In this document: positions 3,301 through 45,252 of the stretch, one piece after another | How the letters are laid out: each line of letters starts with the position of its first letter | Numbering within the stretch: the first letter of the stretch is position 1 | DNA from: Paragordius varius | Lineage: Eukaryota; Animalia; Nematomorpha | Assembly (NCBI GenBank): GCA_964247055.1 | Contig: OZ176052.1 | Coordinates: forward strand, 3,658,001 to 3,722,000 | Direction: 5' to 3' | DNA: 64,000 nucleotides | Position numbers and translations under genes: made by a program | The notes under the pieces: model-generated | Told to the model about the DNA's origin: nothing | Databases searched by the model: none | Seen by the model: the letters and a program-made list of their open reading frames with translations, nothing else

Positions 3301-4973
3301 ATGATAACATTTACAAATATTAAATTATATATTTAGATGTTAACATATAATATGTGCAAATTAATTACAAAGCTTCTGCATACATAATTACACTACAAGT
3401 AAAAAATCTTGCTAGTTTGGCATTATATAATGCCGAGATATCATATATAGTAAAGAGCAATAATATAGGCTAATAGCAAATAAAGCTAAAAAATAACTTT
3501 TAAAACAATATGTCACCCACTATAGATGCTATCTGGTGATATAAAAAAATTACTCACACTGTATATACCCACATACAGTCTGCACATTTATGTTGGCCAA
3601 TTCACATTATTTATTGCCGATTGGTAATACAGTAGCGTATGTATGATATTAAACAAACTTTGCCCATAATTAAATAAACGAATTTAATGTTGTAATAAGA
3701 TAGCAAATTCTTTAAACTCATTTTCAACCATATGTTGTTTTTTATCCATATGCTGCTGCTGTATTTCTATTTGGTCAAAGACAATGTGAATTGGACAACA
3801 TATGTGTGCATAAAATATAAATTAACTATTTGGCCTCTAAAAAACCCTAAACTAATTTAACAAAAAGGGTTAGTTAACCTCCTCCTCCCCCACGCCTTAT
3901 TACAGATCTTACAGGTACTAGCTGTTGACCCGAGGTAGGGAATGAACCAGTCGCAGTAAAAACTCCTGGAGATGAACCTGTGTGAACAGAAGCCATCGAA
4001 GAACGGGATAATTGAATTCCCCCACCTCTGGTCATTTCATCAACTTCCATGCGTTCCAATGGGACGGTTACACTATGTAACAGGCTTAGGACAGATGAAG
4101 AAGGAGGATGATTCGTATAATGGGTCGTGTTGGTTGAAGCGTTTTGTCTAGATAAACATACATACATACATAAAAATATGATTATTATAGGCTTAATTTG
4201 TAGTTTGTATGATAAATTAATAATTTTATCCCCTATATGTACGCGTTTGTGCCATCATCATTATTTATATTCTAAAATGAGTTCACTGCAGTCATTATTT
4301 TACCACATGTTTTAACAATAAAAAGAGTGAAACATACCTGGATCTTTGTACCCAAGATTTAAATTTATACAAAAATTCACAAGTTTTTATATAATTTTAG
4401 CTGAAAAACATAACAATTTCAGTTAATAAGCAAATTGTATGTAATAAGCTTAGGACAGAGGACGATTATAATGGGTGATGTTAAATAAAGCGTTTTATCT
4501 TTAATCCACTATATAGAGTGTGAGTTGATAGATTGGTTTTTTTAATTATTGACAGACACTCATTAAAATGGATTGTCGATTAAAATGATAAAAAAGGAAA
4601 AACAAAATATGTATTAAGCCAATTTGTTTTTTCAAGTGTTATCTGGCAATATTTGATGAAAACTAGCAATATATATTAATTTCACTCCATATTTTCCATA
4701 TATACAATCATATGTTTTAAGAAAATAAAGAGTGCGGATATCCATATCATATTGTATCAAACAAGATAAAATTGTTGAAACTACAAAATTGTCACCTATT
4801 AAAACTTAAAATTTTATTCAAGTTACCATAAAATATCAGGTAAAATGCCCAATGGGTAATTTTTTCTATTAGGACAAATTATAAGGAACTACAATTGCTT
4901 TAAAATGCAAAAGTTGGATATATATACAAAATTTAAAACGTGTCTTAATGTACTGCTTCGGCGGTACATATAA

Positions 4974-5005
<32 letters not shown>

Positions 5006-14509: not shown

Positions 14510-17500
14510 TCATTTAACATTTTTATTGTAATTTAGACTATTTAAATAATAACTGGTCCCAATCAATAAATGCAATTTTTCCCAAAATAAATCTTCACAC
14601 CAATGTAAACACGGGTGTCTGATAAAAATATCAGCCAATTCCGAATATGTAGAAACACAAGTTATGTTTTTGAGTGTGCTACTATTATAATTAAAATTTC
14701 CAAAATTATTTTTATAATCATTATCTCTACTGACAATATTATTATTGTATAAGGAATATGTTTGTCGTTTTCTATTTGCCAAATTTAAAGGAGAATTTGA
14801 AATAGATGATGATTTAATTGGGGACCATATGATTATAATAACGCGATTAGCAGAATTAAAGAGGGATTTCGGCACGCATTTATCTTGTGCCCATGTGATT
14901 GCAAATAAATCTAATATCTGGATATTAGATTTATACAAATAAAATCAAAAATGTTAAATTGTGAATAATAATTTTATATATGGTAAAAAAATAAAAATAA
15001 TTACCTCTTTAATATCCTGACGAGGAATATCAATTTGGTTGGGAAATTCAGGGCAGTTTTTTCCAGCTAATTGGTTTAGTTCAACCCAAGAATCTGCAGA
15101 GATTACAAATAAAATTTTTCGACTGCCTCTAACATCTTCCATAATAATTTCACTCAAAAACATATCTCGGCTATAAGAATTGCATATATGAAGTGGATTT
15201 GATCTGATGCCTATGTATTGTAAAATGTAAAAAAATTGGGATTGGATTCATATTAATAACTAATGATTAATTATATAGCTTGTAAAACTAATAATCTTTT
15301 AAACTTTAAAATGGTCTAATGTAATATGCCACAATATATTAATTAGAATAAATTAAAACAAATCTTGGTACGAAACTATGAGTATGATTTCTCTTGATTA
15401 GACAACTCTATATAGATTTATATAGATCAAACTGCTAAAGGAAACATGCTTGTTAAGTTTTCGTCAAAAAGATATTTAATAACTTATTTTTATTTGATTC
15501 TTTACCGTCTGCTTTTTTAACCAAAGTCAACACTATTTTAAATTTTAACCATTTATATTTACAAACCACGAATTTGGTCGCCCGTGAGAAAACTTATAAA
15601 TATAGACCATCATCATCTTTCGAATTCATGGTGTATAAGTTGAAGCTTTTTTACTTTTACATGCCCTTGAAAACTATGCGATATAGATGTTCAGAATATC
15701 TTAAACTGGGCTGCTCTTTCAGCAAAGGTACCCAGCTTACTCTAAGGGAACGCGCAGTGGAAAAATCATATAATTCATTTTATATTCAGGTAATTATAAT
15801 ACTATTTTACAAAAAATTACAGTCTGGGTAATCAGGCTGTTCGAATAATAAATTTTTAATCATGGGTATATTTTATAAAATCATGAACCGACGCATTTAA
15901 TCAATACCTTTTAAATGTTTATCAGTGTATTTATGCTCAAGCAATCCGCTGGTATTATGGTCAGCAGCTGTTTTGGTTAAGATTGGACACAAAGTTTTGT
16001 GAATGAATGATTGTTGATCTGGACTTCCATCATAACTTACAAACACGTCATAAGTGAACAACGAATACGCCTCTATTATAAATTAAAATCACATGTAAAA
16101 TCGAAAAAGATTTAATTCCTTTTTTATAAAACCCTTTTTACCACTTTGTAAAATAAAATTTTGCTAAGTTAATACCATTCTGGAAAACAGATTATTTCGT
16201 TTAAAATTATATAAAAATATATAAACATCAAAAAAACATATTCCCACAAAAGGTTTTTTGTATTTTTATACTGACCAATAATAGTTCACAAAAAAAGTAG
16301 TGTTTTGATAACAATCATTAAAATTAGATTTTCCAAAAAAAACAATCGATATCGACTTATAACCATTTTGCAAAATAATAGAAATAAACCAGGAAGGGAA
16401 CATATTTTTTTAGAATTAACTTTTTGAAATCTTGGGACCAAAACCATCTTTTTATCCCATAACCGATAACGGAAATATTAAGCACCTTCACATGTGGAAT
16501 CCAAACAGCTGACAAGGTGCTGATTATCGGATGTTTTGAAAAAAGTTTCATTAATTCTATCATCGGCCATTGCACCCTCGATCGAATCATACGTGTTAGA
16601 GTTTGTTGAAGCAGCTGATGAGGAGCCATCTGGTGAATAAACAACATCTGGTAGAGGGCGAGAATGGACATTTATTTGGCCTAATAGAGGATATCTGCCT
16701 TTGAGTAGTTTTTTCATTTCATTTTTATGGGGGGTGGTATTATTAATTTTCTTGCCATTGTTTTTATTTGAATTGGTTTTTTTACGTCGTTTGGAAATCC
16801 AAAAAGCTAAAATGGCAAAAAGGACAAAAACAGCCGCAAAAGCCATACTTGTACCTATTATCACAGGTTTAAATAACCACTGATGCCCATTATTTTGGTT
16901 AAAATTCATAACACTATTATTTGTTGATAAGCTCATATTTATTATATCGAATTCGGTTTCATTAGCAAAAGGTAATGGCACAGTTGTTTTGTCAAGATTT
17001 ATAGTGCCATCAACTGTTTTATTTAGCTCATTTTTAGGAATGTTATTGGCTATTGACGTCAAATTATTTGACTGGAAATATGAAGTTGTTTCATTATTTC
17101 GGATAAATTTTATGTTAGAATCTTTAGAATCAGGTTTAAGTATTGTAGGATCATTGTGAAACAAGTCAATTGAATACCGATCTATATATTCGGCAGAAAT
17201 AGAAGTTATATCATAATTAGTGTTAGTATTGTGACTGTATTTAGTTTGACACATTTTATCAATTGTTTCCGATCCTGCTTTTAATATTTCCCTAATATTT
17301 TTTGAGTTTTGAGCGGGTAAGGGAGAAAATATTTCGTTTTTTAAGTCTATTAAGTTGTATTTTGATATTTTCGATTCTGAATTCAAAGTTATTAGAGTTT
17401 GGGGGAATATTGTTGAATGAAATGCTTGAAGAAGTAAAAAATCCGAAGTTGGTGCTTTTAGTAATAATGATGATTCGTGTTTAGGCACCCTGTAAATGCA

Positions 17501-20500
17501 TGTTAAATCCGAAAACAAATCATTGTTTTTGATATTTAATTTAGAAGTAGATTTTTCGTTTAGTCGAAATAAATATTGCCAAAAACATATATCTGTACAA
17601 TTAAATCGGTTTCCAGCCAAATAAAATTTAAGGGGCTCATCGGTATCAGATGGCATTTTATCTATCATATTTTTTAATATTCTAGCATCTAAATGAGTCA
17701 TTCCATTATAACTGACATCAAAATGTGTGATAGACTGTAGCACATTCGATCTTGTGAAAACAGATGATCGTAATTCAGTTATTTGGTTGAGACTTAAATT
17801 TAACGAATTAATTTGTTCAGTTTTGATAAACATGGAATCCGGAAGTTGAGTCAGCTGATTACAGCTCAAATCTAGGGTTTGAAGTGATATAAGACGTGAT
17901 AGCGCTTTAGGCTCTATAGTAGATATTCCACTACCATTTAAGTACAGATGTTTTAAATAAGACAATGGGAAGAAAGCATAATTGCGTAACCTTATAAGGG
18001 GCCTTTCGTTCCTAATAAAAACATGATTATCATAGTTGGTTGTATTATCGTTTTCATGGATTACAACAGGGTTACTTTTGTTAGATACGTTATCAGAAAT
18101 AGTTGTAGATTTGTTTTTATAATTGTATAAATCGCTACTGTGTTTTTGACTAATGCCATCTATATATAATGCATTTATATCAACACCGTCCCACCAAAGC
18201 TCATTTGTAAATCGAGGCAAATTTTCTGGAACTTTATAAAATTCTGGTGGAATACCTTCCATTGACCAAATAACATTATCCATTTTTTGACTATTTTCTA
18301 AAGTAGATGTCAGATGTTGTGAAAGTGTTGATTTTGACAAGTGTGATGTAAATGTCGTTTCGGATGACTTTAATGTGTTATCATTATTTTGGCTTTCAGC
18401 CGTTGTTATTTTATCTATTTTAATTCCAATATCAGTCGCCTCTTCGACAATATTATGATTTTCGGAATTTTTACTTTTGTTAACTACAGTCTTTTCAGGC
18501 CTCACAACGTGGTTAAAAAATTGTTTTGGCGTAGTTTCTTTTTTCGCGGGAGTACTGTTGGATATTTCTTCGGGATATTGTCCAGAATGTTCTTTTTGTT
18601 TGCTTTCATGACTTTTTTCACTTATATTTTGCCATTCATTCCCCACCAATGAATCATTCGTATTCAAAGGAGGTGGTATGTAACGAGGTCCACACTTTAG
18701 CACAGTATGTGCCCAAAATGCGTCTCGAAAACATATACAACCAGGCGGACAAACATATTTGCAATCACAATAAAAGAAGGTGCAACATTGGCACAATGGG
18801 GCACAATACTCTTCGTAAGGGCATAGAAAGTGAGCACCCGATAAAGGGATTAGCTGTTCACGCTTTACCACACGAAGGTAAGTCTGCCAATCAGCTGTTT
18901 TTCTTTGTTTAGCTCTATCATCCCATATGAGCTCGTCAGATTGCGTGGCGTTTCGTCTGCTCGTAATCATCGTCTGCATTTTAGCACTTTTATCTAAGAA
19001 ACATAAACAATGAATTAGGCATATTTTTTGGCTGTTATAATTTATATTTAATATCAGAGACTATAACAAAACCAAAAATCTATCAAAGTGAGGAGTTTTA
19101 CTCTGGCCGTTATTATAATTATATTTTAATGCAAAAACTTAAACCATTTTTTAGCCATCTTTTAAATATAGTCCGTTATTTTAATCCCACAGTATGCGTT
19201 TTAAATAAAATTAAAAGAAAAAAATTGTTTTTTATTAATACAGTGTAATGGTTAATCTGAGCATAGTGACTATTCGTATTGATGAATATTAATTTAATAT
19301 AATAAATATAAAAGAAAATTATTTAGCTGGAAATCCTAAATGGACAAAAGATGGAGCTTCATGAATTAAATTATCGGTAAAAATAAATATTTAATCATAT
19401 ATATTGTTTGAGTAACGACGAATGTTATAATAAATCGTGGGCATGTCGTGAATAATTAAGAAAAAACTTTTTTTATAAGAAATCCTAATATATTTTAGGG
19501 TATATAACGGGGAATTCCGTAATATACCATTTCATACAATTTAATATTAACACATGTGTTAATGGTTTACTAATGTTTTAAGTAAGAGATATCTTAATAT
19601 TTTCTCTATGCTTATAAATTATCATAGATAAATAGATGGTTAAAAATTGTGCTTCTCCGATAAAATGTTTTTTAAATTTTAGAAACGTTCGTTATTTTTT
19701 TAAATGATAAAAACCGAGAAAATGAGAACCGGTACCGGTTCTAAATCACAGCCTTACGCGTTTCAAATTGTATAATGTATAGTAACTAGGGTTGTGCTGA
19801 CCAAATCATGACCCGGTCAATTGACCGATTCATGACTAGGTCAGTGACTATTTATTTTTTGACCATGGTCATTTAAAAAAACAGCTGTTTTTTTGAAAAA
19901 TTGCTGGTAATTTTTTTTTGAATAGAGATGGTATATTTTATTGTTTGTATTTAAAAAATATAAATTAAATATTTAAAAATGCTTAATTAACAATATATTA
20001 AATGTTAAACATGCAACCTTATAACATTAACATTTAAGCATATCCAGTTATTTCGAAAAACAAAACAATCATGCACTTTGCAAACTATGCAATTATTCCA
20101 TATATGTAAACCAATAAAATAAAAATCATCCTATAATTGGATATTTCAATGATGAAAGAAAGCGTAAAACAAACTCGGTAAAATTTGGTTGAATTACACT
20201 GGACAACAAATTTTTCTGCCATTCGAATTTTTTGAATTTTCTGATATTTAGTATCATTTTAACAGAAAATCTGAAATAAAAATTATAACTCGTTGGAAGA
20301 ATTTTGTATAATTTGATTTTTTTGATTATGCGCCCTCTTTATCAAAATTTTACTAAAAAATATTTTTCTTTCAAAATATACAAGTAATGCCCATTTGTAA
20401 TATATCATTCGAAAGAGTAATAAAAACTCTATAAAATGCATACTAATATGTATTACATCGACACTTAATATTGGACACAAAGAGCGAACGCGCGAAGCGA

Positions 20501-26883: not shown

Positions 26884-28221
26884 ATCGAGTATTTTTTACA
26901 ATTAAAAGAGGATTCAAGAAAATAAGGTTTTTTGATATATGTATTATGTTAATAAAAGTTTAAAAAATAGTCCTTTTATAGAAACCAGATTCATCTAGAT
27001 ATGGCATAAAAATATTTTTCTTTATCCATCATTGTCAATATAAACCCTTTATTATATATCGGCTGTCGAAATGTCAAAACATTCTGATTTTCTTATAGTT
27101 CTACCGCCATCTTCTTTTTTGCCTGTCCAAAATATAATTTTTTATGTCATTTTTTGAATACATTCAAAATATTATACTTGTGACATGTTGTTACCCATTT
27201 TAAGAGATCAAATGGTCATAAAGAATAATTTAGAACCAGGATAGTATTAAAAAACGTGACTCTTCCGACCCTAGAACGGGATCTTATCATTCCTTGGACA
27301 TAGCGATAGTTTTTGTACTATAGAGTTCCTGTTAATTTTAAAAAATTATAAAAAAAAATAATTTTAACATAATACACACCTTCTAAACCTATCGAATACG
27401 CATTAAAATATGTAAGAATAAGTTTCTGATGATTGTGTTTTAGGGATGATAAAATCACCACATGCCAAAATTAAATTGATAACAGTAAACGATCCCACCA
27501 ACCATTAATGTAAAAAATGATTTAATTAAGTATCGCTTTGTTTCATCACTTTAAAAATTTGAATTACTTTTTTACGGACATTTGGCATATATAAAAGAGG
27601 TAAGAACACGATTCAACATTAACACAACAAACTATAGGCTTTTAAGAATAGCAATATAACTATTGATTTATCAATGCAATAAAGTTAACAGTCAGACAAA
27701 ATTCTTATGGTCATATATGGATAACTGCTATATTGTAAACATAAAAAACATCAAATATGGGTGAAAACCACAAAATCGGTTGTATATTTGTGGCATATGT
27801 GAAAAAGTTAAATATGGGTGGAAATGAAGGAAATATTTATGGTATTAGATTACGCTTATTGATGGCTTTTCTCAACGTTAAAAAATAACCAGTTGTGTCA
27901 ATTACTCATTTATTAATATTCTAAAATAAATTCTTTAAACATTATTAGCAAAAAATTAAATGGTTTAAATTGGGCGAGAACTCTCACAATAAAAACTTTA
28001 ACGCTAATGGCACAAATTAAATTTCTAAATTGGTTACAATATTTGACATTTCCTTTGTACTTTAATATAAAACCATTCAACATTAGAATTTTAGCAAATT
28101 ACCAAAACGTACTAAATTATGTATTTATTGCAATGATATATATGGTTGGTACAAAAACGATATGTTATTGGTTATTTACATTTGTGAAAACACATTACAT
28201 ATAAAGACATATTTGCACAAA

Positions 28222-29764
28222 TTATCCAATTTTAGCCTTGGAAAAATCCATTTCAGGATGTTGAGCCATAAATTTTTTGAGCATGTCCATCTTTTTGGCC
28301 TCCTCTGAAGTGGGTAAACCTAGTTCTTTCTGTTTTTGATCATACATCATTTTTTCAACCATACCCCGGGTCTCACCATCTAAATCGGATAGTTTGGAAT
28401 TTTCAGGCACAACTTTTTTCGTATCAATTTCAATGGGATCATTGGTTAGGAGTTTGGACCACCATTCCATTTTATTAACTTTCTCCAGGGTTAACTGTAT
28501 AAGAATAAAGTCAAAATGAAAAATATGAGAAGCGTATAAATAAAATTTGATGTTTTGCTGTTTGTCCACATAATTGATAGGTAAATGTACGAAAAAAAAT
28601 TCTTTAATGTATCACTTTACAATTTCCACAAAATAAAAATCAAAAATATTTGATATGTATATAAAAATAGATAATAAATATCATGGAGCTGTTTATTTCC
28701 TTATACAAGTCGATTTTATGCATTTTCCCTCCTTTAACAATTAATTTATCTTAGAAACATTGTATAGATCCGAAAATGACAGGCATAGTCTTGTATAATA
28801 TTTTCAAGTTAAAAATTAAAATATTTTTGATCAAAAAAATATTAAATTATACATTAATGGTATTTCCATCCGTTAGGAGCCAGGTAGATTCTTCAATCTT
28901 TACCAAATGTTGCAGTTTGCCATTTATGATTGGAGTCGTTATACCTTTTATACTGACTGTCAAGTTATCACGCGTTATGTCAACCTTAATGTCCTTACTC
29001 TTTAACTTAATAGATTTATCGGGGAGGAAATCACCCAGGGGTATTTTAATCTCAAGCTCAGCCAAAGTTTGACACCATTTATGGGTTGGTAAATCAGCCC
29101 CGTTCCCACTATTTGGTTTGACTTTTCCTGAAAAAATAGAAAATAAGGATATATGAAATGATAATTATATAAATTTAATATTGATTGCAGAAGGGTAAAT
29201 TTGTAATTATATTAATAGATTATATATATCGAGACCTAATGGGATTTAAAAAATTTCTATCCTTAATTATTAACAGAAAATTTTTTATTTATATATATAC
29301 CTTCATCAATTTTATCTATATCATCGTCTGAATCGTTCTTTTTTTCTATTGCGTCCCCATTTGCAACAATGTTGCTTTTAACGGCATTACTCTCCTCAAA
29401 TTTTTGTTTTTTGACTTGGATTTCTTTTTCAAGTTTTTGCGCTTCCTCGTCAGTAAGTTCCTAAAAATAAGAAAATTGATACTTTAATTTTTGGTTCATT
29501 TTGTGGGATTATTTTTTTATGAGATTCTTTTTTCAATTGTTTTGATGCCGCAATAGATTTGTATTTTTCAAAGTACTCAAGGACTAACTGTTTTGGTTTT
29601 TCTGCAGATTCCTTATTATTATCGACAAAACACATGGAATAAAAATCCGTTTTCCGTTGCAGAAAGCTGAAAAATATATCTAAAAGTCCTTGAACACCAT
29701 TTTCTTGCTCTTGAGCAACATGTAAAAGAAGAGTATCAAATTTTTCTAAGTCCGAATTTTCCAT
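28222..29764 (-). CDS. NUDC: Nuclear migration protein NudC (Hsp90 co-chaperone, CS domain), 329 aa
   Basis: Exons 29764-29483, 29460-29301, 29127-28853 and 28494-28222 (990 nt). Motifs [65 protein letters not shown] and [14 protein letters not shown] are diagnostic of NudC. Confidence 0.95.
29461..29482 (-). other. 22-nt GT-AG intron (NudC intron 1)
   Basis: GTATCAATTTTCTTATTTTTAG. Removing it fuses EPKIK to ELTDEEA, restoring the conserved NudC motif. Retaining it causes a frameshift and a stop at 29452-29450. Confidence 0.8.
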
Positions 29765-29953
29765 GTTAAATTAATTTTTCAAAAGTAAAACCTTACAATA
29801 AAAGCTTTTAACAGTTGTGGTAATTTAGAAAGCACATGGCTTCACAATTTGATTTGAACAAACCCGCAAAAAGCGTTTATAAACAGATTAAAAAGGTTTT
29901 TTTGTAAAATATTTTGAAGAATAACAAATTAAAAAATAAAAAAGAAATTTAAG
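29765..29953. promoter_or_regulatory. Putative bidirectional promoter shared by NudC and RIOX1
   Basis: Only 189 bp separate the two divergent ATGs (29764 on -, 29954 on +). Confidence 0.7.
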
Positions 29954-32900
29954 ATGACTGAAGTTTCCAAAAATAATCATCATAATGGCCAAATCTTATC
30001 GATTGAATCAAATGATAAGAGTAACAAGCTAAATAAAGTATTTTATTATCAATAGCTAGCCCTATCTATATTCAAATATTAACGATAGCATATTATGGAG
30101 TAATAATGCCTTTGAATGGTTGATTAATCCAATAACCAAAAATGAATTTTCCAAGTTTTTATTATTATAAAACGTAATGTAGAAAGTATTGGGAAAAACA
30201 GGCCCTATATATTCAACGGGATCACAATGGCTATTATTCTCATTTATTTTCATTTAACAAATTTGACCAGATCATTACTGAGGTTTGTTATTTAATTTAT
30301 GTTATGTTATAGCATTATCTTTATTACAACGAAAATATCGACGTAACTTCCTACAAAGATGGTGTTAAAGAATTGCATAATCCTAATGGCAAAGTTTTTT
30401 CCCCGGTTTTATGGGAATATTTCAATGTAAGATTTTTTTTCTATTTAAATCATATTTACAAAATATAATCCTGTAATAAATTGTCCTTATTAATTGTTCC
30501 GGGTGTACCAAGATTTATCTTTAACGAAACATAACTACAGGCGAGTTTTTTGATTACTGGTTTTTTTATGATATATTCCCTTAACCTTATTATATTATTT
30601 ATAAATTTTATATCAAATGTTGTTAAGTGTTTAATGTTACGGTGGTAGTAAAAAATTAGCGGAATGGATTTTACCTGATATGGTTATTTCATCCCACTCA
30701 TGCTTGCGTATGAGTTTAATTTTCTAATTAGACAAAATTTTAATAATTTCTATCAGTCGTGTCATGCGAGTATTTGAACCCTATTTGTGCCCATATTACC
30801 CAGTAAAAATTGAATTTTTAAATATTTTTTTTAAAAAGCCAACCATATTTTTTAAGATTTAATTTTTCAATATAACATAGCGTTAAGGAATAGATAAATT
30901 AATAAAACACTATAAATATTTTACATATTTAATCATAAATTTTTTGCACAAAAACTTTAGGTTTAACAAAGTATACCACTTTTTATAAAAAATAATCTTT
31001 CTTTCAATTTTTTGTTTTGTATAAAACATTGTCAGATGCATATTTGTCTCAGAGTTTTTTTGGAAATTGACCCACTCCAAATATTTTTACTTTCTTTTTC
31101 TGAGCACAAAATAAACTTTTAAACGTATATATAAATACAACAAACGTATTTAGGAGGGATGTTCTGTGCGTTTTTTGAATCCTGCCAAATTTAGTCGTGC
31201 TGTATGGTCCCTTAATGCGGGATTACAGGAATATTTTTCATCATTCGTTGGTTGTAATATGTATCTCACGCCGGCTTATAGCCAAGGCTTTGCCCCTCAC
31301 TACGATGATATTGATGCCTTTGTCCTTCAAATTGAAGGCTCGAAACATTGGAAAGTATATGCCCCTTTCAATAATGGTAATTCTTTTTAACACTTTATTA
31401 CCTTTTTATTTGTTCGTTCGATTACATTTTGATATATCTTTGTACCCCAAAGAGCTTTATTTATAAACTACTGTTTTAAAGGTTATTTTGGTTAAAATGA
31501 AATTAACAAATATTGTTATCCTGTATTTGATAAAAAGGCTTATATTTTTTGCAGTTTTCTCACTGAGTAAGTTCGAAATTGGGCTATTATAAAAACTAGA
31601 TTGAGTGGTACAGCTGAATTCATAATTATTAATCAGAATTTTTGCTAAAATGTATCGAAAAGCTTTTTCAAGTTAATTATTTACCTATATTAACTGTATA
31701 TTCATATATTTGCCTATTGTATTCAATTTAAATTAAAAAAAATTGCAGCCAAAGGGTTTGAAGAGAGTTTTTTTAAATTTTGTTCAAAAAAAAATTATTA
31801 ATCATGCACCAAACGTCTAAAGAATGAATATATTTCCAATATAAAAGCTTTTGAAAATTTTCGAACTTTAAATACCGTGGGCACAAAATAGCTTTAAAAG
31901 ATAATGAAGTGTTAAAGTGATTATGGTTTTTAACTTTTACGTGCTTAATTGACCTGAGTTTTGGTTCATAATAAATGGTTATCCGTTGATTTTTAATATT
32001 TATGCATAAAATTTAAAAATTTAAGGAAATCGATTTTAAGGTTCGTTAATATTGGATACCAGCATATTTTATATAAGATAAAGTCATTTAGTTTTAATAA
32101 ATCTATTTTTACTGTTTTTCTTTCACTTCAATGAATCAAATTTAAATTATATATTTTATTGATGAATTTTGTAAAAGCATCGCCAAAACCGCACGTCCTT
32201 TTTTTCCCCATGCCCAATCACAGTAAAAATTAAATTATACGGGAAAATCATAAAAATATAAAGACAAATTCTTTAAAAAGACAACCAACCATGCTATTTT
32301 AAACCTTAATTCTATAAAAATTATTAATTTATAATAAATGGAATTATATACCTATTTAATTGTCATACCAATATATATTCTATTTCATACTTTACAGTTT
32401 TACACAATGTTTTAGTTATATTTAAAAAATCAAGATGCAAATTTATAATTTTACTTGTCCGTATAGTTCCAATTTTACTATATTCCTTTTTTTCTGACTT
32501 TTATTGTGTGTTAAATTCTGCGGAAATTATTCTAACAAGATTTTGTAAATTATATGTATATACGGTGTTATTTTATTAATTGAATAAAAAATATCATGTT
32601 TCCATATACAATAAATATATTAATAATATTTTTTAATGACTATAGCAAAATAGTTTTTTTATAAGCGCTATTTTATTTTCAAATATTACCTAATATAATC
32701 TCGATTATTATTATTATACATGGATGGTGAATAGATTTAACCTTGCCCCTAAAATCAAGCGTGGATTTTAACGAAACATCCACATTTACCCCTGAATATT
32801 GGCGAAATCCAATCCTTGAGGTGTGTTTGAAACCTGGTGATTTGCTTTATATGCCACGCGGGTTCGTTCATCAAGCTTCTACCATACCACCCAATGAAAA

Positions 32901-35900
32901 TGGTTAAAGAAAATTTATTTTTAAATTAATTTTAATTAAGATTGCTTTTTATATAATGATTATAGAATACTTTAGCGAATCTATTAATATAGTTATAACT
33001 TGAAAATATTCTCCTTAAGCTGTTTATTTTCAAAAATGTAGCTGAATTGAAGGTTTTTATTTTTGTTTTTCAATTGTTTCTACTTTCCGCATCTTCACTC
33101 TTTAGTTTGGACTCAGTAAGGTCGTCGTATATGGAACTGAAATAGCTTTTGAATAGCTTCCCAGGTTTATCTTGTGGTCTACTATAGATGTGACCAGCCC
33201 ATCTTAGTCTTTTGGCATTTAGAAAGGGGTTTAGAGCAGTGATTTTAAGGATTTTTAGAAATCGAATTGATTACAAAAGGAGATATTTTAAGATTATGAA
33301 CAAATAGAATTGTTAGTATTTTGGATTTAAAGTTTTGGAATTTACAAAGATAAATTTTGTCATAGACCAGTATATCGTGGCATAGGTCAGCGCAGCACGG
33401 ATAATTATAGAATATAACTGCGATTTCATTTCAAGTATGATAAATCTATTATTAATTATGTGTTAGGTTATGGTATATTATTATGCCTTCAGGTGACGTT
33501 TTTTGAGGCTATCATTAATACCGCCTTTAGCGGGCATTTTATCGCCTAATTATATTAAGTGAGTTACCGTTTCGTAATTGAAATTATTGGGGATTGCAAG
33601 ATTAGGTTCTGGTAGTGGTAACTTATCAATGCAGTTTGAGCAAGTGGACTTATCTACCTTAAGTTAATATAGGTTTGCGCATTTTTTATGTTGCCGGAAA
33701 TTACATTTAGTGTACAATATAGAGTTTGCCTTCACAGCTAGCTTGCAAATGCTACATGGGTACTTAATGGGGTTTTTTATATTATCATGCATTAATTTTG
33801 TTTTGCTTGGATTAATTTGAGATAACTTTCCAATCAATTTTTCCATTGATCAGATTGATTATAGGAGGTCGTCTTCCGGTGAATTCACTCATAACAAGAT
33901 TATCTGCAAAGAGCAGTTCCAAGTTGGACCCCTACGTATATCCATTGTAATTTCATCATTTATTATAATAAACAGTGGGGAACCTTGGTGTAGCCCTCAA
34001 GGTACGCTTATTGTTTCCGAAAGATTAAACAAGGTCTTAATTCGGGCTTTGGAGTCGGTGTTTAACAACGTTATTATGCTTTTTATCATCCATTCTTAGA
34101 TTAGCTTTTAATTTGATTTTTGCAATCTGGCAAAAGCACAATCGATGCGATTTTTATACTTTGTCAGCTGCCAGCGGTTCTTCTCTGAAATTTATCCCTG
34201 TATTACCCCTTCTTTGACGTAGTAAAGGCGTTTGACTTTATCCCAAGATCGATGATAACATGAACCATAAGAAGAAAAAGGATTTTCAAAAGCATAATAC
34301 TGTTATATTCCGACTTTAAAGCCCAAATTAAGATATTCTATATGGTCTTTCTGAAACAATCAGTATACAATCAGGGCAACATCAAGATTCTTTTAAAAAT
34401 TTGGACTGATTATTTAAAAGTGAAGTGGTTATCACAGTTACGGTCTGGAAAATATATTTTAAATTTTGTGTTAAATAATTTTTTAGCCATCCTTATGAAT
34501 AAAAATAATTTTGCTGATTATACTTATTGTGTTTAGATTCGGCATCGCATTCACTTCATTTAACCTTATCAGTGTGCCAATCATCAACATGGGGTCAAAC
34601 CATTGAAAAAGGATTTTTACATGCACTTCGAACACTTATGCATACGGATGTCGAATTTAGAAAATCTTTACCACCCGGTCATCTGAACTACATGGGACAA
34701 ATGTTTGAGGGCAAAGATGCAGTATTAGGTATGAATTATTTAGGTTGAAGTTTTGAAAAGTTTTTTATTGAACAAACTTTAAATAATAATTTAATGTTGT
34801 AGACAAATGTGGTTTTTGAGAATATATGTGTTTGTCGCTATATTTTTAATTGTACAAAGATTTTTTTCTTCCGGTGTGGACAAACAAAATATTACACATA
34901 TTAATATATTCAGGTTTATTTTCTGTTTAATATTGAATCTCGAATATTGGGCTAACTATAAAAAAATTATGTGTTTTATCTTTTTCAATCTTAATTTATT
35001 GGAATATACGCTTGTCAAATACGTTAATGGCGTAACCGTTTCGCTTTATAAACATTTTTATAATGAAGTTTATTTGGTGGTATTTACGAATTGGTGTTAC
35101 GTATTGGCCTTAAAAAATATTTTATTTCGTAACACGTTTTTATCCTATATGGATTTTTTAATTTCCTTAGCAATTATTTATAAATAAATGACTTTTTGCG
35201 TAAATTATATTTGTTTTATTGGTCAATGCCTGTGCGCTTTTATAGCATTTATAAATCTTCTAGGTGAATTGTTGGTTTAAGATAATTGCATTTACTCAAA
35301 ATGTTTATACTTAAAATCTTTCTTGACATATAGCTAATTAATGGTTATAAAGATAGAAAAAATTTTTTTATATTGATCTATTTACCATTTTAATTTTTAT
35401 ACATTATCATATAATTACATATTTTATTTTTATACACTATCATACAAATACATATTTCATGTAAATTAATTTTTGTAAATTCCTTAACATATACTCTTAT
35501 ACAAATAAAACAGGTGTTGACTATGAAAATAAACGGAAACAATTTAAAACAACCATCTCGACACTTGTGAATCGCGTTTTTGAAACAATGTCTCCAGACA
35601 CTGCGGTTGAATCTATGACTTTATCACGTTATATTCCAGAAAGTTTACCACCATACCTTGCGACAAAACAAGAAAAGCTATCCACAATCCATAGTTTTCA
35701 TCAGTCAACTGATGTTAGTTCAAAAGGTAATTTATTTGTTTTGCACACTAATTTTGTTTATATAACTTAAAATAATGACAAAATTCCTCCTATGAATGAT
35801 GATATAACTTAAATCTTTAAATATTAACTGCATATTTATATTGTGCTTTTAGCGATAGTAGTTGAATATAAAAATCATAAATGATCTCATGGTATGATAC

Positions 35901-37108
35901 CTATGATATTTTAAATCTAAGAACCACAGAAAAATTCATTTAAATTGTTTAGTTAGAATTTAAAAAAAATATATAAAAGTTTTACCATTTTTAGATTATT
36001 TTTTACCAAATGAAAAAGTTAATTTGGTATGTAATTTATATTGCAGTTTTAATGGGAGAATCTCTTTTCCCAAATTTGTCATTACGGACACGTATTAAAT
36101 TGGTTCGATATGGATCTCATCGTATAGTAACACCTGACACGTGCTCTTTTGAAAAAGGTTGTTTGTTTCATAAAAATATTTGGTTAATAAACTTAAGTTT
36201 TCGAAGGTAACTTGAAAAAAAAATTTATATTTGATTCTTTATAGGTCAAATCATATTTTTACTATGCTAGATATAAACGAAATTATGGTGAATCCGCCCA
36301 CATTACAAAATGATTTGATGGAAAATGAAAGCCCCTCCTACTATATGGTATACCATAATTTAGAGAATGGATTGAATTATAAGGAAAAACCCATACAAAG
36401 TTTTGCAATAACTCCTGAGGTATTTATATAGTTAATAAAAATTAAACATAACTTAAAAACTACTAAATACAAATATTTTTGTCCCATGTATAGCCATACA
36501 TAGTTTATCCCTAATTATTTTAAATTATCTGAGTAATTACAATTGTGAAATTGAGTATACCAATGTACATCTTTATTTCACAACCCAAAAATTATTAGAT
36601 CCAAAAATTCTAGCTTTCTTTTAAAAAATATTTGTTTTAGTCAGCACATTTTGTATTTATAATTTCTGATTTTTGGGCTAAAAACCTTTTTTTCCAATTG
36701 ATATACTTTATTAAATTAAAGCTTTAAACCCCCTTTTTGAATTATATTAGGTATGTTCAGTTATTAAATATTTAATGAAGACATATCCAAAATACATTCC
36801 CATCTCCAAATTACCTTTGAGTGAGGAACGTGAAAAGGTATTTTATGTGATTTTTAACATTTTTAATTTCTCAATAAATCGTAAATTATTCTCGAAAATA
36901 TAGCTTTAATATTGCATTACATTGGTTTAATTAAAATTATTTTAATGGTTATATAATATACATTCACACACTTTTTACTAAATAATACGTATTTTAATAG
37001 ATTGATGTCGCATTGTCATTGTTTGAAAAAGGGCTCATCAAACTTCATTGCAAGCCAAAACCAGGCAAAAAAGTTACGAAAAAGAATTCATTGATAATTA
37101 TTGAATAA
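29954..37108 (+). CDS. RIOX1: JmjC ribosomal oxygenase / histone demethylase NO66-like, ~547 aa
   Basis: Exons 29954-30037, 30060-30154, 30183-30282, 30313-30426, 31154-31376, 32735-32902, 34537-34728, 35514-35726, 36047-36157, 36271-36419, 36751-36837 and 37001-37108 (1644 nt, phases consistent). Motifs [69 protein letters not shown] and FEKGLI are present, and the HxD...H iron triad is intact. The first exon and start codon are less certain. Confidence 0.9.
30038..30059 (+). other. Probable 22-nt GT-AG intron (RIOX1 intron 1)
   Basis: GTATTTTATTATCAATAGCTAG. The acceptor is fixed because its TAG is an in-frame stop. The donor could alternatively be 30021 (39-nt intron, different ATG) or 29963 (97 nt). 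Confidence 0.5.
30155..30182 (+). other. 28-nt GT-AG intron (RIOX1 intron 2)
   Basis: GTTTTTATTATTATAAAACGTAATGTAG separates [14 protein letters not shown] from [12 protein letters not shown], which are contiguous in NO66 proteins. Retention gives an in-frame TAA and a frameshift. Confidence 0.85.
30283..30312 (+). other. 30-nt GT-AG intron (RIOX1 intron 3)
   Basis: GTTTGTTATTTAATTTATGTTATGTTATAG lies between FDQIITE and [14 protein letters not shown]. The terminal TAG is an in-frame stop if the segment is retained. Confidence 0.85.
33080..33945 (-). mobile_element. Degenerate RTE-X-like LINE, 3' part (RT YADD region, Cys/His finger, C-terminus)
   Basis: Reading through frameshifts gives IRRG.(P)[35 protein letters not shown]...C...[13 protein letters not shown] and KRLRWAGHI. 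It lies in RIOX1 intron 6. Confidence 0.8.
34020..34340 (+). mobile_element. Degenerate RTE-like LINE reverse-transcriptase fragment (upstream RT motifs), opposite orientation to the adjacent piece
   Basis: [15 protein letters not shown] (~34126-34170) and [13 protein letters not shown] (~34210-34248) match the GRSTTDAIF..RQL and F.DLEKAFD.VPR motifs of RTE-type RTs. Confidence 0.75.
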
Positions 37109-37372: not shown

Positions 37373-38439
37373 ATAACATGTAAGAGTGGAGAATTATAGG
37401 AAAGGCTAGACTTTATAACAATGATCTCTAACCTAGGGCCCCATAAAAATTATGGGGGGCTGAATAATATTTTTCCCTTTTTTCTAGTTACTAGAAATAT
37501 AGTAAAACCTAATAATTTAAATCTTTAAATAAGTTGTGTCCATGATTTCATAAGCAAAATTTGTTATCATAAAAGATAAATTTTTCTATCATTTGCTTCT
37601 AAATATAATGATATATGCCATCTCAATTTTAGGACTAATAAAAATAATAGAGCTATAATCAGTATTTGTGAGATCGAAATAAATTCGATAGGACCGTTTC
37701 GATTCAAATTATGGCATGGAATATATTTTTAACTTTTAGGAGGACGTATAGACAGAGAAAAGTTTTAAAACCGTAGTATTATCGATTGCGGATATATGCA
37801 TTTTTTAAAAATTTGTAATAAATATTTTTTGTAAGTTTTAAACCATATATCACGTAACAATAACTCAAAATCTGCATAATTCTAAATATTCAAATTGTCC
37901 GAGAGCTAGAGAAAGCGTTATATCGTGTATTATAAATAAATGAAAATAACTTAGTTTATAGAAAAAACTTTGTTTATTAGCGAAGACTGGTAAAGAAAAA
38001 AACTGTTGTTTAGTTGACATTTACCTTAGAGGTACCGCGCACAAAGCTTGGTTGTCCATCCTACATGCTTTTTTTAATATTTTTTCCTCAAAAATACATT
38101 TTATATATTTGACTTTTACTAGATAATTTTCTAATATTATTTTATATAAAATGTATGAAAATAAAAATAGTTACAATTTTTTTCTTATTTCCTCTTTTCG
38201 GAATTCTTTATTGAGTTGCTTTCCATCTATATTATTTGTTAATAAATATATATTTGGTTTACACACATATTGTGGTTCTGTTGCCCATAATTCCCCTTTG
38301 ATCAAGAATAATATTACTAATGAATTAAATGAAACCAATTTTTTACTAAATCTATGTTAAACTGACATCGAACTTACGAATTAAGTGCCATTTCAATTAT
38401 TTTCATTCCGTGTAAAGCGAAAAACAAAATGTACTTTTG

Positions 38440-38958: not shown

Positions 38959-41900
38959 TAGTGTCTATTCATAAGTTTTTACGGGTTTTATATTAAAAAC
39001 ACTAGTAATTTTGAAAGGGATCAATATTTAATTCAAATATTGTGTGTCGCTTTCATACCATTCCTCTCATCATAAGGTAAAGCATAATTACCGTGCCAGA
39101 AAAACTGATTAACATTTGCGATATATCAATCGTCAAGCCATTTTTCAATGTTTTCAAAATTATTTCAGTGCTACTCTGCGAGGGGCCCTATTGATGCGAG
39201 GTTATATTAAATGGAGCTTGCAGGAGTCAGATGATGCGGAAAAAATTACCGTCGAAGCGATTTAAATGTGTCTCGTTGGTTTGCATGACGGGACGTCGTG
39301 TAGCATAGCAATATTTGTGGCTCATTCCAGTTGTTTTACAAATGCATGGTTTTAATTTGGAATAGCGACAGTGTTTTGCATAAATGCTCTTCTTCCCAAT
39401 TCGATGCTAAATTCGATGTTAAAGCAGGATTTCACAAGTTAGTTTGCAATTAACGATTTGATGTTTACTCCATTTATCATGTTTATTGGTCTTTCCTATT
39501 GCTCTTAGACATCTATTGATTGCTGATACATGTAATGGTGTAAATCTTTATCATCTTTGCAATTTGTAGCGTACAAGAGCGCCAACTTTCTTTCATCTTG
39601 TAAACTAAACGTTTACATTTTTAGAAACGATGTTTCACATGTTTCAATCAATGGAGCATGTTAACCATATGTTTCTACCAAACGAAACTTTCAGCGGTGT
39701 TAATTTCTCTGATGATGCAGGCCGCAAAATTCCTCTTCAGACACAAAATTCGACATAATTACTGAATGATAAAAACTAGACGCTAGTTTTTGGTATATTC
39801 AACTTGTGTGTGTTGTCGTTTATGTCAGATCATTGGGGTTTATAATAAATCGTTCGCGTATTTTTCTTTGACGTCTTTTAGTTAAACCAGTAATAGCTTA
39901 GGAATACAATACGTATATATAACAATGAATTAATCAAATCTGTCTCATTTAAGGCTAATTTGGTAAAATACACCTATATACTAAAATAGGTAACAATAGA
40001 AGTACCACAAACACATCTCAAAATCAAAACTTACCAGTTTATGAAACACACCATTATTTAATGAACAAATTACCCTATCAAGCGTCTTCAATCTTTGATA
40101 TAGCAACGCTCAAGAGTGCCGATATTATTAATAGCAATCTCAATCACAATCATCAGTATAGTAGTAATCTAACCAATAACTTGCAAAATACGTTGGATTC
40201 TTCCCTTTCTTCAGCATTTTCCACGGATTTCACTTCCCCAACAAATAGTAGCGTGAGTTTTGATGAAGTTTCCTACAATAACTTCAACAATAATAATATT
40301 AATAATTCATCGACATACATTAGTAACAATTTGTACCAAAGTGGATTTAGCATTTATGGTTTCCCTCACAATAAACAACGCAAAAGGACACATTATACTC
40401 AAGAACAACTAAACTGTTTGGAGGATTTGTTTCAAAAAAATCATTACCCAAATTCGGAGGAAAAGAAAAAATTATCATACAAAATCGATATTGAAGAGGC
40501 AAAAATACATGTATCATATTAAATAATTTTGATTTTTTGTTTAATTTAAATGTTTCTTGGGAAAATATTTCAATTTTTGGAAGTTATGAACAGATTAGCA
40601 AAAATACATAGTTTTATGGGGTACGCTTAAACCATATTTTATATATAGATTAATATGCTGTTTCGCATTCATTTATAAGTTTTTGTATTTTTAAGTGGTC
40701 AACCATCCTTTAAATAAATTAAGCACTTAGAGAATTTTTTTTGAAAAGACAACCATACTTTTTAAACTTTGAATTATCTTAATAACTATATTCCTTGATT
40801 GGGTGTGTTACCAATTTATATCTATATTCATTATTTTGCCAACCCAAAATAATGAGTTATAAACTTAAAAATCTTATTTGTCTGTTAGTTTATATATTTT
40901 GTCCGTATAATTTCAAAAATTACTGTACTTTAATTTTAGGTATGGTTTCAAAACCGAAGATCTCGCGAAAACAAAAGCAAGAAATTTGGCAATAAGAAAA
41001 TGAAGATGGCAACCAATTCGTTCGAAGGTTTTAATACATTGTTTAATTTGATTTATTTTATGGTATCGTTACGTCAGTACACTACTCACTATAATATGTT
41101 AACATTAAACTGAAACTTAATTAACCAGATTTTCAGTGTCGTGTTAATTAAAATATAGGTTTGACAAGACAAAGTTTTTCAAACAATTCCAAAGAATATA
41201 TTTTCCCTAGATGTTATCAGGTGATTAGTAATTTTTGGATGGCGATATTTAAGTAAACAAAAAAATATTTATTATTTTTACCATATATTAAAATGCTAAA
41301 TTCTATTAAATCATGTCCAAAAAATATTTGTGTTTCAATATCAACTTATCCGCAATAATGTTGGATTGTGACCTAATATTATTTATATAAAAATCACAGG
41401 TTTAAATAGGTAACAATCCAAATTTATTGAATTTACTATTTACATTACATATTTATTAAAAACATGAATTTTTAAGTACAAATTTGGAAAAGCAATCAAA
41501 AAGGCTTCATGGTGTTTTAACAGTTTGGGCACGACCTTTTCACTTTTTTGTCAGCGGTGGTAGTTTTTTATCCCAGTGCCCAATCTTGGAAATAAACTAC
41601 TGTTTTAAAGGTTATTATAGTTAAAATTTAATTATCTAAAAATGTTGTTTTGTATTAGATAAAAAGCTTATATTTTTACAGTTTTATGACTTCTAGAGTT
41701 TAAAATTGTTACCGCTTCAAATAAGACTAAACAGCTGTTATTAAATCGATAAATATCATGTTGCTGGTAAAGTGCAATTTGAAACCTTACTGTTTATCAT
41801 TTTCATTTTCTAACCATAATAAACATTTAATTGCCTATTCCATTTATCAAATCAAAAAAAAGATAAAAAATGGCGGCGAAAACGTTTGAGATAAGATTTT

Positions 41901-44900
41901 TTATTTATATTTTCAAAGAAATTTTTTTAGTATCGTGTGAAACGGCTAAATATCGCATATTTTTAATTCGACATAGTATCTTAAATACTTTTGCTTTATC
42001 GCATATTAAACTACACCAAAAGATGAAGTGTTAATCTAATTTTTAACATAGAGCATTTCCTAATCATGTCACTCAATATCTTTAATGTATTTTACAGTAA
42101 AAACTAAAATTATACTGACAAAACGAAAAATATAGAGACAATTTTTTTTTCAAAAGACAACCGTGCTTTTTCAAACCTTAATTTTTTTCCATATAAATTA
42201 TTTAATTACAATTGAAAATATATAACAGACAACAAATTTTAACTTTTTTAAACTGCCAATTTATTTCATTAAAGTACATATCTGAAAAGAAAATTGGTCT
42301 AGTATGAAAGAATTTTTTTATATTAGAGTTTATCGATATTTTTTGGCCTCGATTTAACATTAAACTCGAAAATTAAAAGTTTTTAGATATGAAGCCATGT
42401 ATTTTAAATCATTCGAAAGAGCGCAAAAAACTGAATTTTTAAATGGTAGTAAGTCATTTAAATCAAGCGGATGTAAAAGTTATTTGGATTTAAATGGTCG
42501 AAATTTTCAATCCTTAAATAAGTCAAGAATTTTCACAGACAAACCAATTTGAAAATCATATAAATTATTTTAATATAATTATTAGGGTTATATTAGTATT
42601 TAATTTAAAAAAAAATGTTTAAGCTTTTGGGTTGCTTTTTTTATAAAAAATAATTATTATCATAAATATTTTACCTAGTGGATACTAAAATGCATAGTTA
42701 TAACCGTAAATTTATTACATAATGGCTATAAAAGATCAAAAATACCTTAAACTTTGTTTATCTTTAAAATTTCGATATAATCAGCCTCGTAAAGAAAATA
42801 AATTAATATTGATGAGATGGTAATTTTTAAAAAACAAAAAACTTAAAATTGGCTGTTTTGAGTGACAAAGCAATAAAAAATGTTTTAATCAAAAAAACTT
42901 TCTTGTGTTATCTTTTTTGGACATTCATCACCATCTAAACAAAGTTTGAGCTATTTTCATCCATTAGTTTTAAAAATATAATAATTAAAAAAAATGCTCT
43001 CGCTTCGCGCGTTTGTCGCTCTTTGTGTCCAATATTAACTGTCGATGTAATACATATTAGTATTCATTTTATAAAGTTTTTATTACTCTTTCGATGGGCA
43101 TTACCCGTATATTTTCAAAAAACATTTTTTAGTAAAATTTTGATAAAGAGGGCCCATAATCAAAGAAATCAAATTATACAAAATTCTTCCATCGAGTTAT
43201 AATTTTTATTTCAGATTTACTGTTAAAATGATACTAAATATCAGAAAATGCAAAAAACTCGAGTGGCAGAAAAATTTGTTGTCCAGTGTAATTGATTATA
43301 TTACCAATTTACATCTCGATATACTTTTACTTTTAAAACCATTTATATTATAAAAATCAAGAATTATGAATTATGGTTGCTAGAAAACAATATTTGTCTT
43401 TTTTATATTTTTACGTTTTGTCCTTATAATATCAATTTTTACTGTATTTTTATTTATTTAAAAAATATTACCAGATTCGGAATCAAATTTATCACAAGAT
43501 ATTATGGATATGAATAATGAGAGTTATCAAAATGATCAATGTGAACAAAATAATACTACACATTTTAGAAGTAATAATTTGCTGGATTCAAGCTATAAAT
43601 CCTCCAATATTGGTTACACTTACAATAATAAAAATAATCAATATATTGAAATAGCAAACAATAACTGTAATAACATAAAAGCGCCAGAAACCTCTGACAA
43701 TATGTACTTTTTAAGCAAATACATATATGATAAAAAGACGAATCAAATCATAGAGCAAAAATTTGATTACAATAATGTCAAGAATTTGCTTATTCATAAT
43801 CAATCTCATATGAATGAGGTCCTACCAACTCCCCTACTTTCTAATTTTTTGAATAAATCTACTGGCAGTAATACAATGCAAAATGGTACATCAAATCACA
43901 TTTTACATGCCAAAAGTGGTATGCTAAATGTTCAATGGAACAACAATGTTATGTTTAAAAGCATTAATGATTCCAACAACCTTAATGGTAATGTTGCAAA
44001 CACAACTTACAATTTAAATGATTATATTAACATCAATAAAAATTTAATGGTGGCCAGTAAAGCAATGATTTTAACCAATTCAAACGGTTCTGCATATATC
44101 CCCAAAAATATTGTAAGTGATCAAAATTGTGCCATGGTAAAAGGCAATGATAATATATTAAACTTAAATCGGTCATCATCCATCCTCGATTTGGTTAATG
44201 CACAAAATTCTACGGTTCCAGCTTCAGCAACAACATTAGATAATTTGGTTTATAGCGTTTTGAACAAATGTAAACCAAGCATATATTTAGAGCATAATTA
44301 CAAAACAACATCGATTGAAAACGGAACATCAACTGCAATGACTGGCGACTCAAATAACAAAATTTATAATAATTTCAATATAAATGTTGATAAAGAGCCT
44401 GAAAATTATAATAAATATGATGTTAACACACCGAGTTATGGCCAGCAAGGAATTGACCCAAAACAAAAGTCCACGACGATGGATGAAATGATATCAAAAT
44501 CGTTACAACCAATCTCTGATTACGTTTGTAGCGGCGAACCTTATGAAAATTTTGGCTGCCAAGAGTATCCAGCAGTGTCTGATAATGCACATTGTTCAAA
44601 CAATTCGTCTTGGTCCTTTTTTCTCGATGACACGGTGGATAATGGAATGGATCTTTGCAATGAAGAATTCGCCGCACATAATAGTATCAGTACGCCAAAT
44701 TATTACGAGAATAAAACACCCTCACCCCTATTCGATTTCCCTACCGATATATTTCAATCAAGCCCACTACCTTTGAGTGTTACTACGGGCAAAAACAGTT
44801 TTATTCATACTACACATAATTATTTCCCGAATGAATCAATCAATGATGACTTATATACAGATTCATGTCCACAAGTTGATGATAATTATGAATTAAAAAA

Positions 44901-45252
44901 TTTTCTGGTCCCATCGCCGAAATATGAGATACCCGGTCTGAAATCGCTAAATGAACAACCCAGCTTCTTTGAAACATTGAGCAAAATACAATTTGAGGAA
45001 AGCTTTAAGCAACCGACAAACCAATTACCCCCTTTGTCATTTTATTTTAAGCATAGCAACAATCATAGTTTTAAGGACAATGCTGATACAACAAGCAAAG
45101 AAACGTTTGATTTTTTTCATGATGAAACACCCATAAATATGGCAGAAACTTTACCATCCAATTTATCTTACAATATTAATAATAGCAATCTTAACGGCCT
45201 TTACGATGGGTTTGAAATGGCAGACATATTCCCAAATTATGAAAATATGTGA
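38440..45252 (+). CDS. Divergent PRD-class (Q50) homeodomain transcription factor, ~829 aa, Asn-rich
   Basis: Exons 38440-38590, 40038-40510, 40940-41027 and 43475-45252 (2490 nt, phases 1,0,1). The homeodomain KQRKRTHYTQEQLNCLEDLFQKNHYPNSEEKKKLSYKIDIEEAKIH|VWFQNRRSRENKSK has its intron between residues 46 and 47, the position typical of PRD-class genes. Exon 1 is the least certain. Confidence 0.85.
38923..38958. repeat. (AT)n microsatellite
   Basis: 36 bp of AT repeat with one C interruption. Shorter (AT)n runs occur near 1270 and 9400. Confidence 0.95.
39040..39890 (-). mobile_element. Decayed DNA transposon, probably MULE-type transposase relic
   Basis: Locally higher GC and full of stops. 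The minus strand gives N(H)AFV..WNEPQILLCY across a frameshift, and FFWHGNYALPYDERNGMKATHNI. These resemble MULE NAF...LLCxxH and TNNxxExxxN motifs. The segment 39735-39890 is repeated at ~13515-13670. Confidence 0.45.
41521..42030. mobile_element. TTAA-flanked (piggyBac-type) non-autonomous element
   Basis: TTAA at 41517-41520 and 42031-42034. The internal AAAATGGCGGCGAAAA.GTTTGAGAT.AG and the GAAGTGTTAA end are shared with copies at ~24600-25100, ~31480-31915 and, inverted, ~60650-60900. TIR identity is weak. Confidence 0.6.
42226..43288. mobile_element. Family B Tc1/mariner-type element, inverted relative to 20197-21304
   Basis: Ends AAATTTGTTGTCCAGTG-TA at 43288. It is collinear with the reverse complement of 20197-21304 over about 1 kb. 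The left TIR is damaged (CAGACAACAAATTTT). It lies in homeobox intron 3. Confidence 0.8.

Follow-up and report, generated by a model that had tools for sequence, protein, structure and literature searches.

Introns of C. elegans are rarely shorter than about 40 nt, and at the nematode 3' splice site, UUUUCAG/R, U2AF binding does not depend on a strong consensus at the branch site. Animal introns below 30 nt have long been treated as annotation errors, and as of September 2026 the published animal cases comprised two highly reduced parasite lineages and were explained by genome compaction (PMC13644364). That comparison of 51 genomes found animal introns below 30 bp only in the myxobolid Myxozoa and in Dicyema japonicum, tied such ultra-short introns to parasitism and genome reduction, and predicted that more cases would follow; Nematomorpha are absent from its main text (PMC13644364, Mol Biol Evol, September 2026). 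A second comparable system is found in the flatworms, where Opisthorchis felineus and others possess a discrete short class of microintrons beside kilobase introns, clustered and located preferentially near the transcription start, which is missed when the minimum intron length of the annotation software is set too high (PMC6530080). Among the ciliates, Paramecium has tiny introns of about 25 nt and Stentor of 15-16 nt. To the lineages with tiny introns that were listed in an earlier note on this DNA, including the dicyemids, the myxobolid Myxozoa are now to be added (PMC13644364).

Here we analysed a window of 64,000 nucleotides from the hairworm Paragordius varius, the whole stretch of DNA to which all positions below refer. 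From its sequence we concluded, with a probability of roughly 0.88, that the 22-nt segment 29482-29461 is a real spliceosomal intron of the U2 type with GT-AG ends, the first of an intact four-exon gene for the housekeeping protein NudC. Ultra-short GT-AG introns are a known kind, and this one apparently places them in a third animal lineage. A literature search on hairworm introns found nothing relevant, and the word "intron" is absent from both the Gordionus genome paper and the comparative paper on four hairworm genomes.

The NudC gene and its 22-nt segment

The NudC gene consists of four exons on the minus strand (29764-28222) with 990 nt of coding sequence, equivalent to 329 aa and a stop. 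Homology searches were run exon by exon, with the exons kept as separate queries. Exon 1 (29483..29764, minus strand, 282 nt) begins with the ATG at 29764, comprises 94 codons and ends in NEPKIK; it matched Pfam Nudc_N at 1.2e-12 with 48 bits (cut-off 31), and phmmer, run with this exon, found 170 NudC N-termini among 1.84 billion representatives. Exon 2 (29301..29460, minus strand, 160 nt), which starts with ELTDEEA and ends in phase 1, matched Pfam NuDC at 1.6e-6 over profile positions 11-62 of 66; positions 1-10 of the profile are missing from this exon, and exon 2 alone scores 28.9 bits (cut-off 30.2). Exon 3 (28853..29127, minus strand, 275 nt) carries the CS domain (Pfam CS, 6.3e-13, 50 bits, cut-off 21.3), and exon 4 (28222..28494, minus strand, 273 nt including the TAA stop) encodes the conserved C-terminus, for which 2181 proteins were retrieved at E<=1e-10, the best of them 75-81% identical and those with names being NudC of arthropods, nematodes, and flatworms.

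On our own profile, built from seven full-length NudC orthologues, exon 2 begins at position 105, exon 3 covers positions 154-237, and exon 4 covers 239-327, with a score of 169 bits for the C-terminus. A point against the intron reading is that the K/E-rich linker before PKIK falls about 19 residues short of this profile, although its length varies among orthologues. Judged by its Nudc_N, NuDC, and CS domains and its conserved C-terminal tail, the gene is a canonical NudC.

Between exons 1 and 2 lies GTATCAATTTTCTTATTTTTAG (29461..29482, minus strand), in the minus-strand context ...AAT GAA CCA AAA ATT AAA / GTATCAATTTTCTTATTTTTAG / GAA CTT ACT GAC GAG GAA GCG.... The earlier note had described this segment as exactly 22 nt long, with GT...AG ends, in phase 0 and inside a conserved motif, and the minus-strand reading bears this out in every respect. 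Likewise, its protein lengths of 329 aa upon removal and 104 aa upon retention agree with the sum of the exons and with the open reading frame 29450..29764, respectively. Unspliced RNA would shift the frame and run into a stop at 29452-29450, 10 codons past exon 1, and the resulting message, encoding only the 104-aa fragment, would presumably be subject to nonsense-mediated decay. Splicing, on the other hand, would join AAA (Lys94) to GAA (Glu95) and thereby PKIK of exon 1 to ELTDEEA of exon 2, restoring the 11-residue PKIKELTDEEA and the full-length NudC.

Among the 150 matches listed, four orthologues contain exactly this motif without interruption and 22 contain a looser form of it. In an alignment with orthologues (A1), the NEPKIK at the end of exon 1 lines up with EEPKIK in P0058 (amphioxus), P0129, and P0010, and exon 2 follows directly, its first residues facing ELTDEEAEKLQAEL, with 0 residues missing or extra; the end of the one exon and the start of the other adjoin opposite EEPKIKELTDEEAEKLQ of P0058 and P0129. 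Every GT..AG pair around the segment that keeps the frame open was enumerated, and in the other pairs (37, 88, 91, 124, 139, 145 nt and more) either the acceptor lacks a T tract or the donor is the weak GTCCTT, and all of them delete residues conserved in A1. Among all of these pairs, the 22-nt GT-AG segment is the only one whose removal would yield the orthologous protein.

The segment also resembles the two longer introns of the same gene, namely intron 2 (29128..29300, minus strand, 173 nt, GTATAT...TTTTTTCAG) and intron 3 (28495..28852, minus strand, 358 nt, GTATAA...TTCTTATACAG). Its G+C content is 18%, compared with 17% in intron 2, 22% in intron 3, and 30-39% in the exons, and 59% of its bases are T. 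All three introns open with GTAT, that of the 22-nt segment being part of the 5' splice site GTATCA, and all three (3/3) have CTTAT, a form of yUnAy, near the 3' AG. In the short intron this CTTAT lies at 29467..29471 (minus strand), with its A at 29468, which is intron position 15 and the eighth base back from the 3' end, and a T5 tract and the AG follow (29467-29461). We regard CTTAT as a putative branch site on the strength of the motif and its recurrence in introns 2 and 3.

These features are those of a U2-type GT-AG intron: the terminal GT and AG fall at exon boundaries that were set independently by homology, for which the probability by chance, at the local base composition, is about 0.002 for both ends together, and a branch-site-like CTTAT and a T5 pyrimidine tract, if they function as their sequence suggests, precede the AG. 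With a length below 30 nt and a 5' motif reduced to GTa, the segment also has the properties of the ultra-short introns. Almost the whole of the 22 nt would be signal, in that a minimal 5' splice site (GTA, then TCA) is followed by a short spacer, then by CTTAT, and then by the nematode-style TTTTTAG/G. The overall reading of the earlier note, a spliceosomal intron in an animal NudC gene, is thus supported by the domains, by the join in A1, and by the intron-like signals.

Alternative readings of the segment

One alternative, which we consider very unlikely, is that the gene is a young pseudogene whose frame was broken by a 22-nt insertion, for example a footprint of DNA repair or of a transposon, and that the RNA always retains it. 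Retention does truncate the protein, and the position is intronless in the other animals that we checked: there is no intron at the PKI(K)/E(L)TDEE join in the NudC genes of amphioxus (contig L001), Trichinella (L003), and GCA_902177915.1 (L006), in each of which the motif lies within one exon. In both amphioxus and Trichinella an intron does occur downstream of the join, at a distance of 17-20 codons. Since the motif is contained in a single exon in all three, the position is not that of a widely shared ancestral intron, and its conservation lends no support to the intron. An insertion, however, would need to have brought GT and AG exactly to the homology boundary, together with T-richness and the GTAT and CTTAT shared with the other introns; the remaining 990 nt show no damage and strong conservation; and the neighbouring RIOX1-like gene has the same kind of segment three times. 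If the segment is an intron, as we prefer, it may be a lineage-specific gain, and it could have been born as a micro-intron.

We also looked for the NudC gene of a close relative, and none was found: a word search with the 104-aa open reading frame and a search with exon 3 returned nothing, and none of the 2181 matches of exon 4 exceeded 81% identity. The most promising match, P0153 (contig L005), was rejected as a relative on account of its 48% G+C and divergent CS exon, and P0006 (contig L007), with a contiguous SKIQELTDEEA, was set aside as a metagenome contig with a homopolymer frameshift.

Equally improbable is that the intron is real but that the main mRNA uses another pair of splice sites, of which the 37-nt and the 124-nt pairs both keep the frame open. 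The 37-nt option would use the donor at 29482 with an acceptor at 29446, CTGACGAG, which lacks a T tract, and would delete ELTDE, that is, the most conserved residues of the motif. For the 124-nt option, the earlier note had calculated an intron from the donor GTCCTT at 29584 with a loss of 34 residues, and this arithmetic is right, the intron being in phase 0 and the residues lost 61-94; with its acceptor at 29461, this pair combines an unfavourable donor with the deletion of residues that align with the orthologues, including LVLEYFEKY.

An assembly artefact, in which the 22 nt would be a spurious insertion or the collapsed remnant of a longer intron, has a probability that we judge to be smaller again. 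The sharing of sampled words over 28000-31000 (X1 0.76, X2 0.61, X3 0.43) does not resolve the site and to that extent leaves room for an artefact. Errors of long reads, however, are homopolymer indels and do not take the form of a 22-nt insert with splice signals; a collapsed intron would hardly keep perfect GT...AG ends in the correct phase; and the stretch is present in six listed sequencing runs from three studies, none recorded as RNA.

Least probable of all is removal by means other than the spliceosome, whether as an intron of the IRE1/XBP1 type or one cut by a tRNA-type endonuclease, by ribosomal bypassing, or by programmed DNA elimination: the size is near that of the 26-nt XBP1 intron, but spliceosomal removal is indicated by the GT-AG ends and by the signals that ordinary introns also have, the 82-nt context is unstructured (MFE -4.7 kcal/mol, z = +0.79, with 158 of 200 shuffles folding at least as well), and CNG loop motifs are absent at the junctions. 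The XBP1 type, with its twin stem-loops bearing CNGNNGN loops at the cut sites, and the tRNA type are excluded because the context has no such fold and the junctions no CNG loops, and ribosomal bypass and DNA elimination were rejected on the sequence at the junctions and the fold test.

Within the spliceosomal reading, a U12-type intron was also considered. The U12 consensus is RTATCCTT at the 5' end and TCCTTAAC at the branch site; here GTATCAAT fits the first five bases only (GTATC) and TTCTTATT fits the branch consensus at 5/8 positions, and the U12 type was rejected. The other candidate micro-introns of the window start with GTATTT, GTTTTT, and GTTTGT.

The neighbouring gene and the rest of the window

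A RIOX1/NO66-like gene is divergent from NudC on the opposite strand, with the two ATGs 190 nt apart. The head-to-head spacer between them (29765-29954) is likely a bidirectional promoter; Rfam and ARAGORN scans of the whole window gave no match at 29922-29958. We assigned the RIOX1/NO66-like identity because two of its exons match JmjC_2, at 31166-31387 (plus strand, 3.1e-18) and 32743-32904 (plus strand, 1.9e-8).

Judging from its reading frame, the 5' part of this gene seems to contain a further three tiny introns, all of them AT-rich GT...AG segments on the plus strand whose removal is needed for an open frame: 22 nt at 30038-30059, 28 nt at 30155-30182, and 30 nt at 30283-30312. They lie 84, 201, and 329 nt after the ATG, within the first 360 nt of the gene, and an intron of roughly 700 nt comes after them. 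The exon pieces between them are too short for homology, and only exon 3 touches human NO66, at residues 41-69 with an E of about 0.5. In the small local picture that two genes provide, micro-introns seem to cluster at the 5' ends of genes while the later introns are long.

The window has a G+C content of about 27%; the 26.93% G+C and the repeat load of 63.8% published for the genome of Gordionus montsenyensis are both compatible with it. With only a handful of genes in its 64 kb, it is gene-poor and repeat-rich. It contains a full-length U6 snRNA gene (4950-5055, plus strand; 114 bits to Rfam RF00026) in which the ACAGAGA and AGC boxes are intact and which has a TATA-like element upstream near 4929-4937 and a T-run terminator; given this canonical U6, nothing in the window points to an unusual catalytic core. 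The remaining open reading frames include one with a homeodomain (40061-40519, plus strand, 4.3e-11), one for an 833-aa LRR protein (16481-18979, minus strand), and one with DUF4749 (52490-52837, minus strand), a domain of PDZ-LIM proteins, and all three fit an animal genome.

A repeated element is present at 43132-45252 (plus strand) and 20271-20353 (minus strand). Both copies contain identical 19-nt GT...AG segments, GTTATAATTTTTATTTCAG and GTAAAATTTTGATAAAGAG, flanked by open frames, and in the plus-strand copy a 31-nt candidate (43444-43474) comes next, followed by a 582-aa open reading frame that has no Pfam match. The element may be a transposon gene with micro-introns of its own. For the micro-intron candidates obtained by scanning, at 36207-36244, 38356-38385, 43196-43214, and 43444-43474, the flanking open reading frames had no Pfam match.

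Relation to known short-intron systems

On the reading that we prefer, the 22-nt intron of NudC would be recognised by intron definition close to the promoter and would belong to a discrete class of about 20-30 nt at the 5' ends of genes, in a repeat-rich, gene-poor genome whose other introns run to hundreds of bases. That the genome as a whole harbours such a discrete promoter-proximal class beside introns of hundreds to thousands of bases, and removes it with a spliceosome that is otherwise canonical, is a tentative proposal to which we give somewhat less than even odds. If true, a third animal lineage would join the two with introns below the 30-nt limit, and it would be the first of them whose genome is not compacted. 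A 22-nt intron beside introns of 173 and 358 nt in a gene-poor, repeat-rich genome does not fit the compaction account, and it points instead to position-dependent, promoter-proximal splicing like that of the flatworm microintrons, at a shorter length. It would also offer a natural minimal substrate for the question of how a canonical spliceosome fits a 5' splice site, a branch point, and a 3' splice site into 22 nt.

There may also be implications for annotation, as a gene finder that accepts no intron below about 40 nt would either cut the NudC model short or miss the gene altogether. Were the class to extend genome-wide, the gene-loss and BUSCO figures of hairworms would need to be re-checked, for example the 71.6% reported for Gordionus montsenyensis, and part of the hairworm gene loss and low BUSCO completeness could be an annotation artefact, because standard gene finders skip such introns.

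Compared with the known systems, the 3' ends of the first two NudC introns, TTTTTAG/G in intron 1 and TTTTTTCAG/G in intron 2, are like the nematode 3' splice site. The size range is shared with the tiny introns of ciliates, as is the creation of a premature stop upon retention: neither 22 nor 28 nt is divisible by three, and an in-frame TAG is present in the 30-nt candidate of the RIOX1-like gene. In Paramecium and Stentor, however, all introns are tiny, whereas here an animal would have a two-class intron system.

The architecture is like that described for the flatworm microintrons, in that the first intron of NudC, 282 nt after the ATG, and the first three of the RIOX1-like gene would form a discrete short class, clustered and 5'-proximal, beside long introns, in a sample of two genes only. 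The lengths, in contrast, are 22, 22, 28, and 30 nt here, compared with a peak at about 37 bp in the flatworms (PMC6530080), which are another lineage.

With the Myxobolidae and Dicyema (PMC13644364), the locus shares the presence, in an animal, of a GT-AG intron near 22 nt in length with the 5' signal reduced to GTA, a single A a few bases upstream of the AG, and the retention of a canonical spliceosomal RNA, which is U6 here and U2 in that study. Those lineages, however, have compact genomes with a median intron length of 22-27 bp, and AG is all that is left of their 3' signal. Such a dominance of short introns is not seen here, where the same gene has introns of 173 and 358 nt and the RIOX1-like gene one of about 700 nt, the window has few genes and many repeats, and the intron still ends in a TTTTTAG tract.
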